A DNA stretch of 64,000 nucleotides. Origin: Salpingoeca rosetta (Eukaryota > Protista > Choanoflagellata). A program made the translations under genes and the position numbers. Shown here piece by piece: positions 39,663 to 40,342 of this stretch. The stretch's first letter is position 1. Every line of letters begins with the position of its first letter. The stretch is from contig JAWQFM010000013.1 of NCBI GenBank assembly GCA_033442325.1, positions 334,069 to 398,068 on the forward strand. The letters run 5' to 3'. The notes beneath the pieces are model-generated. The model worked only from the letters and a program-made list of their open reading frames with translations, was not told the DNA's origin and searched no databases.

Positions 39663-40019
39663 TGTTGCGTGATGGACGGATAGGTGATGAGAGCAAACAG
39701 CTGATGATGCGTCGTCGTGTTGACGAGTTGAATGGGGGAGGGGTTGCGGGAAAGTGACACAGAAGGGCTGGTGGTGGTCGACTGCACGAGTGAGTGTGTT
39801 ACGAGCAGTGGTGGAAGTTTGTGGAGTGCGGGTTTCGCAACACAGACACACGTGAATGCTGGTAACGACTGATTTCAGTTTGTTCATTACCAATTGGGCG
39901 TATCTTCCGATGAGTAAGTTGAGCAACAATTTTTATTTTGCTGGTTGTTGATGTGAGAACCCACAAGCGTGCAAACTAGTTGGAAAACTTGATAGCTTTG
40001 CTCGACTCCACTTATCGTC
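39663..40019. promoter_or_regulatory. Probable shared divergent promoter region for EPRS and U2
   Basis: EPRS ATG (39662, minus) and U2 5' end (~40020, plus) are ~360 bp apart; the spacer is partly AT-richer and lacks microsatellites. Confidence 0.5.
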
Positions 40020-40205
40020 AACGCTTCAGGGCAATTTTTGCTCGGATCAAGTGTAGTAAATGTTTAGATTAGTGTAATATCTAATCGCCACTCTTCGGAG
40101 TGGCCGATATTACTCTACTATTTGGGACTGGTGGTGCGGCGTCTGCTTGCAGCGCCCACCACAAGCATGGCCCTGGTATTGCACTACTTCCAGGAGCTGT
40201 GCACG
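40020..40205 (+). ncRNA. U2: U2 spliceosomal snRNA (divergent 5' domain)
   Basis: GATCAAGTGTAGTA with branch-recognition GTAGTA at 40053-40058. Stem IIa GATTAG/CTAATC with loop TGTAATAT and its IIc partner ATATTAC (40107-40113). Stem IIb GCCACTC-TTCG-GAGTGGC. Stem III with CUUG loop. Stem IV CCTGG-TATTGCACTACTT-CCAGG, ending GTGCAC. Length ~186 nt. Confidence 0.95.
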
Positions 40206-40342
40206 GCACACTCGCCAGCCAATCTCTCATGGTTCGCTCGGCAACTCTCAATCGAATAGAAAGAAACGTACCTCATGTTTGGTTTGATGCGGAATTGTTG
40301 TGACTGGTGCGTTCAATTTTCTCCACTGACAATCGCCAAGAG

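Follow-up and report, generated by a model that had tools for sequence, protein, structure and literature searches.

A choanoflagellate U2 snRNA with altered bases beside its branch-point recognition sequence and a predicted looser stem-loop

The locus described here raises the question of whether a U2 small nuclear RNA (snRNA) with an altered 5′ domain is the main U2 of its organism, a specialised paralogue or a decaying copy. The bases that follow the branch-point recognition sequence GUAGUA are among the least variable of U2, and they supply one strand of the branchpoint-interacting stem-loop (BSL), which is thought to gate branch-site recognition. We analysed a 64-kb stretch of the Salpingoeca rosetta genome (here, the window) in which an initial annotation, made from the sequence, had pointed to a U2 gene with changes in exactly this region. 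We consider it highly probable that the gene at 40020–40209 is one of two near-identical genes that encode the sole functional major-spliceosome U2 of this organism, with fixed changes in the flank of GUAGUA that would make the BSL looser. Literature searches on the snRNAs of choanoflagellates or of Salpingoeca turned up no account of this U2.

Identity and structure of the U2 gene

The identity of the gene is established by its match to the Rfam U2 model (RF00004), which spans 40020–40209 on the + strand and covers model positions 1–192 of 192, with 120.4 bits compared with a gathering score of 46. U2 is the sole Rfam family matched across the 64-kb window, and the model and stranded reads together place the length of the RNA at about 188–190 nt. 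We rejected an identity as U12 snRNA, which shares the Rfam clan and the branch-site-pairing role of U2; within this clan the U2 model scores best, by a wide margin.

The structural features of U2 are present (stem-loops I, IIa, IIb, III and IV and the IIa/IIc switch; pair tables and folds). The 5′ sequence quoted in the initial annotation matches the window exactly at 40020–40072, and its account of a rebuilt but paired 5′ domain held when checked pair by pair. Stem-loop I (40026–40046; pair table and RNAfold) is rebuilt with the pairs G10:C24, G11.U23, G12:C22, C13:G21, A14:U20 and A15:U19; the G10:C24 pair is gained, the equivalent of the canonical U9:A24 pair is lost (A9 x G25), and the folding energy is −6.3 kcal/mol compared with −8.2 kcal/mol for the Rfam consensus (RNAfold). 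The segments of helix Ib (GCU) and helix Ia (GAUCA) are kept on either side of a CG bulge (40040–40049), and GUAGUA (40053–40058) is unaltered in the sequence and in the Rfam alignment. Stem-loop IIa (40067–40086; Rfam alignment and pair table) has a stem of six pairs (GAUUAG/CUAAUC), two of which are changed on both strands relative to the consensus, and its loop GUAAUAU (40074–40080) can form seven Watson–Crick pairs with AUAUUAC (40107–40113), the 3′ arm of stem IIc. Further downstream lie stem-loop IIb with a C(UUCG)G tetraloop (40087–40104; pair table), stem-loop III (40131–40162; Rfam alignment and RNAfold of the 3′ domain) and stem-loop IV (40165–40202). In the loop of stem-loop IV, the window copy has T at position 40188 where the second gene copy and both environmental relatives described below have C. 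This bookkeeping of pairs is established.

The Sm site, which lies between stem IIb and stem-loop III, is the short form UAUUUGG (40119–40125), with a run of only three U and with U as its first base, compared with PuAU4-6GPu in the published consensus (PMC2396436). The U4 of this genome has an identical heptamer (L022:1611–1620), U1 and U5 have AUUUUUG, and both environmental relatives read AUUUGGAAC at this site (40126 G>A). As far as these sequences go, the short Sm site looks like a local norm.

Strongly conserved positions are given in upper case in the Rfam consensus and variable positions in lower case. Five strongly conserved positions are changed in this U2 (U2>A, U39>A, C40>A, C45>U and U46>A in human numbering), and one conserved pair of stem IIa is changed on both sides. 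The bulge (aa) and positions 9–11 (ucg) are in lower case, and the real departures are therefore the five strongly conserved bases and the stem IIa pair. Directly after GUAGUA, on the 3′ strand of the BSL, the sequence reads AAUGUUUA (40059–40066) instead of the canonical UCUGUUCU, as had been noted; the changed positions are 40059, 40060, 40065 and 40066, with AA for UC and UA for CU. Judged by the upper-case Rfam consensus and by general statements on conservation, this state of the flank appears to differ from that of almost all other U2s.

Compared with the canonical U2 of animals, fungi and plants (RF00004), the RNA is the same in its length, GUAGUA, helix Ia/Ib segments, stem-loops I, IIa, IIb, III and IV, IIc alternative, presence of an Sm site, and snRNA-type promoter and 3′ box. 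It differs in the five substitutions at conserved positions, the stem IIa pair that is changed on both sides, a stem-loop I that is longer by one base, the short Sm site and a BSL that is predicted to be weaker. The U2 of Giardia lamblia, also the sole U2 of its organism, likewise has lineage-specific departures in the 5′ domain, but it is far more diverged (GUGUAGUU, with 26 of 39 bases shared with human over positions 13–51 and no clear Sm site; PMC3510501), whereas the U2 described here is otherwise close to the animal type. It is a lineage-specific version of a known RNA and in other respects an ordinary housekeeping snRNA.

Copy number and expression

To the variant bases the initial annotation had attached two alternatives: a main U2 that has diverged, or a specialised paralogue that serves a subset of introns. 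Searches of the genome (55.4 Mb in 68 contigs) with the covariance model returned two U2 matches, the window copy and a second copy 505 kb away on the same contig. The two copies differ at 1 of 190 RNA positions (40188, T versus C) and at about 10 of 155 upstream positions, which indicates selection on the RNA; their similarity ends at the 3′-box-like element at 40260–40272. Exactly two genomic matches were found for the variant core ATCAAGTGTAGTA (one-mismatch matches, 16 compared with 45 for a reversed-pattern control). The canonical core GTAGTATCTGTTCT has zero exact matches in the genome and 11 one-mismatch matches compared with 19 in the control. No further U2 lies behind any of the 16 genomic copies of the promoter element described below. 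These searches establish the copy number, and a co-existing canonical U2, the presence of which had been proposed as a check, appeared in none of them, whether by core motif, covariance model or promoter element.

Transcription of the gene was examined in raw stranded reads from the same organism (about a quarter of run X44). The U2 gene is covered by 215 stranded reads, and every first mate maps to the minus strand, the usual signature of + strand RNA in stranded libraries. Read depth is zero in all bins upstream of 40020 and about 190 within the gene. Coverage begins at 40020, the mature 3′ end can be placed from read starts at 40207, and a thin 3′ tail of reads reaches about 40257, just before the 3′ box, as expected of 3′-extended precursors. 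Two differences in the reads match the second copy: T>C at 40188 (27 of 43 reads) and a 2-nt deletion at 40223 (3 of 10 reads). Both U2 genes are therefore transcribed, and expression is established for both copies. Reads with less than 90% identity are limited to 1 of the 215, and there is no other base difference at a 10% threshold. Given this uniformity, nothing in the reads points to an additional, canonical U2 RNA. A few reads stop inside U2 just past the Sm site (40125 and 40131) and continue into untemplated runs of A; these are probably oligoadenylated decay intermediates.

A specialised paralogue that serves an intron subset beside a canonical U2 would account for the unusual sequence, which taken alone points in this direction, but the 55.4-Mb genome holds no canonical U2 gene or core motif and the RNA reads form one population. 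Nor was a U12 gene found in the genome, a weak negative given that control genomes gave no U12 signal either; this absence agrees with the published lack of a minor spliceosome in the choanoflagellate Monosiga (PMC2396436, PMC2846911) and also counts against the paralogue. We therefore regard the paralogue as extremely unlikely. Collapsed or unassembled U2 copies would lie beyond the reach of a genome search, and the RNA reads argue against a canonical one. The alternative of a main U2 is the one borne out, with two near-identical genes, both expressed, and no canonical copy in the genome. Decay of the locus into a pseudogene has a still smaller, almost negligible probability: the promoter element and the 3′ box are intact and common to other snRNA genes, the depth in the RNA run is about 190x, every stem is intact, and the sequence is kept in relatives with compensatory changes.

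Conservation in environmental relatives

Two environmental relatives are represented by contigs from metatranscriptomes. One contig, from a marine metatranscriptome (X15), covers 40035–40204 with 10 differences, none of them at U2 positions 16–69. Six of the ten make up three double changes from one Watson–Crick pair to another in stem IIb (C70:G83 to U:A, A71:U82 to G:C and U73:A80 to C:G). The unaligned 5′ end of this contig reads ACATGGGG and then AACGCTTCAGGGCC; its 5′ terminus is thus unchanged, and its stem-loop I differs within the loop. We presume that ACATGGGG is the end of a template-switch oligonucleotide, and its place before AACGC fits a defined 5′ end. The other contig, from a hypersaline lake (X17), covers 40043–40196 with 5 differences and none at positions 24–69. 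Assuming an even spread of differences along the RNA, the chance of finding none in the conserved stretch is ~0.02 for X15 and ~0.17 for X17.

The AAUGUUUA segment is identical in the second gene copy and in the contigs of X15, X17 and a third data set, X37. The X37 contig, from a run labelled as another organism, is 136 nt long with adapter in front, is 100% identical over 40056–40170 and spans the variant bases; it may be carry-over from the sequenced organism and was left out of the independent relatives. One metagenome match to the variant 20-mer GATCAAGTGTAGTAAATGTT was rejected as a chance match, as it lies in AT-rich, coding-like sequence without a U2.

Conservation of the variant bases in the two relatives is established, in line with the earlier description of the changes as selected rather than decayed. 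The identical 5′ domain and the compensatory changes in stem IIb together indicate that the unusual bases are fixed and subject to purifying selection. From the contigs compared here, the variant 5′ domain appears to be the conserved state of a species group, and to be more constrained than the 3′ domain.

Pairing with U6

Profile and motif searches found one U6 gene in the genome, at 815095–815275 of contig 9. Two further U6-like matches, each with two mismatches (L019 and L020), were rejected; the sequence that surrounds them is unrelated. From the 5′ stem-loop to the ISL loop, this U6 is nearly identical to the Rfam consensus, including ACAGAGAAGAUUAGCAUGGCCCCUGCGCAA, and before ACAGAGA it has UUGGACAGAUAC, with GAUAC kept (the gene reads UUGGACAGAUACAGAGA / GGACAGAUACAGAGA). 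Helix I (Ia/Ib) of U2 with U6 AGAUUAGCA has an energy of −6.1 kcal/mol compared with −6.2 kcal/mol for the consensus.

In helix II, U2 positions 2–12 (40021–40031) and the U6 tail of the same genome form 7 + 4 bp across a 2-nt bulge in U6 (−16.3 kcal/mol; RNAduplex), with U2 positions 2–8 paired to GAAGCGU and positions 9–12 to CCCU. The 5′ end of U2 had been described as the exact complement of the U6 segment UGAAGCGUU. Helix II is indeed strong, but the real U6 reads UGAAGCGUA, and A1 of U2 is left unpaired, with pairing starting at A2. Co-variation between U2 and U6 is plausible in helix II only, where A9 and G10–G12 of U2 face U and CCC of U6.

Helix III presents a different picture. The U2 and U6 of this genome pair with −3.8 kcal/mol, the two Rfam consensus sequences with −6.9 kcal/mol, and a canonical U2 with the U6 of this genome with −11.1 kcal/mol. 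The difference between −3.8 kcal/mol for the organism's own U2 and −11.1 kcal/mol for a canonical U2 means that helix III is weakened and not compensated. A co-evolved U6, with a AAACAUUUAC-like sequence ahead of ACAGAGA that restores pairing, had been predicted. A residual 6-bp duplex with G.U pairs between U2 UGUUUA and U6 UGGACA, which accounts for the −3.8 kcal/mol, is what remains in favour of such co-evolution; the only U6 gene, however, reads GGACAGAUACAGAGA and fits a canonical U2 better than its own, and we judge the prediction to have failed and the co-evolution of helix III to be very unlikely. The fit of U6 to a canonical U2 may have been inherited from an ancestor with a canonical U2. 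The weakened pairing shows that this lineage can dispense with U2/U6 complementarity in helix III. In the same region, U6 GGACAGAUA (L003:1533–1542) pairs at 9 of 9 bases, one of them as G.U, with the canonical U2 UAUCUGUUC, which is better than with its own U2.

A side finding concerns the U6 gene, which is outside the window. U6 carries a 65-nt insertion (L003:1573–1637; contig 9, 815167–815231), which is flanked by GCGCAA and GGAUGACACG and sits on the 3′ edge of the loop of the catalytic ISL. The insertion is unique in the genome, folds as a long hairpin and contains GGTTCGATGCC, which we take to resemble a Pol III B box. A passage in PMC5855946 cites Frendewey et al. (1990) for a B box held in the intron of fission-yeast U6. 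The 5′ AUCU of U4 pairs with GGAU of U6 only when the insertion is absent (−26.5 compared with −20.3 kcal/mol), and this modelled pairing suggests that mature U6 lacks the insertion. A GU–AG intron appears unlikely, as no GU...AG pair restores the canonical stem-loop sequence.

The branchpoint-interacting stem-loop

In human U2, the BSL consists of G25:C45, A26:U44, U27xU43, C28:G42, A29:U41, A30xC40, G31.U39 and U32:A38 (2026, PMC13019295), and its closing pair stacks on a tryptophan of SF3A3 (PMC13019295). Positions in the U2 described here correspond to human numbering +1. The closing G25:C45 is weakened to the wobble G26.U46, and G31.U39 is lost (G32xA40); A26:U44, C28:G42, A29:U41 and U32:A38 are kept as A27:U45, C29:G43, A30:U42 and U33:A39; the mismatch U27xU43 is kept as U28xU44, and A30xC40 is still a mismatch (A31xA41). 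Of the six standard pairs, only one is thus lost; another is altered from G:C to G.U, and the two mismatches persist. A nearest-neighbour calculation on naked RNA gives +6.2 kcal/mol here compared with −0.3 kcal/mol for the consensus, a value at which even the canonical BSL is barely stable; for the BSL segment of this U2, RNAfold predicts no structure. Such predictions of BSL stability are hard to interpret, as proteins and modifications shape U2 (PMC13019295). We infer from these pairs and energies that the changed bases affect the BSL and branch-site choice, and the BSL of the lineage is predicted to be looser. The bases U39 and C40 are pseudouridine and 2′-O-methyl sites in fission yeast and animals (PMC5733568); both are replaced here, so that these modifications are impossible at these bases.

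Engineered human mutants provide a point of comparison. Mutant M6 (G31U; PMC13019295) removes G31.U39, the same pair that is removed by the natural U39>A change; mutant M3 (G25A; PMC13019295) targets the closing G25:C45, the same pair that the natural C45>U change weakens to G.U without breaking it. The natural changes are on the 3′ strand of the BSL and leave helix Ia with U6 untouched, and they are fixed in a lineage, whereas M3 and M6/M7 were tested with reporters. In human cells, weak branch points lose their disadvantage when loop-proximal BSL pairs are disrupted (M6 and M7), and splicing depends less on branch-point complementarity (PMC13019295).

In the explanation that we propose, U2 is transcribed from a standard snRNA-type promoter and ends ahead of the 3′ box. 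Its stems I and IIa have been rebuilt through changes on both strands, with GUAGUA, the helix Ia/Ib segments and all stem-loops left intact, and the changed 3′ flank of GUAGUA would loosen the BSL. Under the toehold strand-invasion model, a looser BSL would make the branch-site reader easier for the intron to open. The choice of branch site could then depend less on complementarity, unless proteins or RNA modifications compensate.

The last proviso leads to a serious rival to a looser BSL, namely that the substitutions are silent, with SF3A3, SF3B1, TAT-SF1-type proteins or RNA modifications holding the BSL in place and the changes reflecting tolerated drift at positions that matter less than their conservation implies. 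This would fit with the loss of no more than one standard BSL pair and the persistence of both mismatches, with the mild reduction in human U2 levels on disruption of single BSL pairs (PMC13019295) and with the finding that there is little selection for Watson–Crick pairing in the extended branch helix in human (PMC13019295). However, two diverged relatives keep the variant without exception while differing in the 3′ domain, which points to constraint on the new state, and the lost G.U pair belongs to the loop-proximal class that alters branch-point dependence in human reporters (PMC13019295). On balance we consider silent, protein-compensated change to be possible but doubtful.

A looser BSL remains the reading that we prefer. 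It can be carried further, to an animal-related lineage that splices with a constitutively loosened BSL and with a U6 that bears a 65-nt insertion, and so to a viable retuning of branch-site proofreading; this extended version we regard as unlikely. If true, the retuned proofreading could show as altered branch-point usage. A free-living organism with fixed BSL changes and no canonical U2 as a fallback would be a natural counterpart to the engineered BSL mutants, and it offers a concrete test case for the toehold model, in which four bases can be set against the dependence on branch-site complementarity.

Promoter elements and other small-RNA genes

The features of a Pol II snRNA-type gene are all present at U2: the shared promoter 19-mer, a 3′ box of the form AAAGAAA(C/T)GTA(C), and transcription. 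The proximal promoter element, a PSE-like 19-mer (ACCCACAAGCGTGCAAACT; 39959–39977, + strand), lies at −61 to −43 of the U2 start. In its general form, ACCCACAAG(C/T)GTGCAAACT, the 19-mer has 16 exact copies in the genome, with ~0.001 expected by chance, and it stands at −61 to −43 of two U1, two U2 and two U3 genes, of U4, of two probable U5 genes and of a few RNAs without assignment. The U1 and U3 genes behind this element were identified with Rfam, and the two U5 loci were read from their loop sequence. Downstream, the 3′-box-like 13-mer AAAGAAACGTACC (40260–40272, + strand) has exact copies after both U2 genes and both probable U5 genes; the box after U4 is a one-base variant, and U1 and U3 have looser AAAGAAA(C/T)GTA-like versions, as judged by eye. 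The promoter 19-mer and the 3′ box together provide a simple way to list the Pol II small-RNA genes of this organism.

Several loci found in this way lie outside the set of Rfam matches. Two of them (L024:1562–1700 and L029:1562–1700) are U5-like by eye, with the loop GCCUUUUACUAGAG and the Sm site AUUUUUGG, and score below the Rfam gathering score; on these motifs they are probable U5 snRNA genes. Three units driven by the promoter element (L027, L037 and L040, each from 1562) are without a match in Rfam and are candidates for new small RNAs; one of these, L037, has a box-C-like GATGATGA. Four loci (L031, L035, L038 and L039), together with L028, which is largely masked with N, make up a multi-copy family: the promoter element leads into a 3′-box-like AAAGAAACGT, after which comes an open reading frame that starts with MSNPKKTAVKRP. 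This reading frame carries the motif CALHAVNNLL, which by eye we take to recall Josephin-type deubiquitinases.
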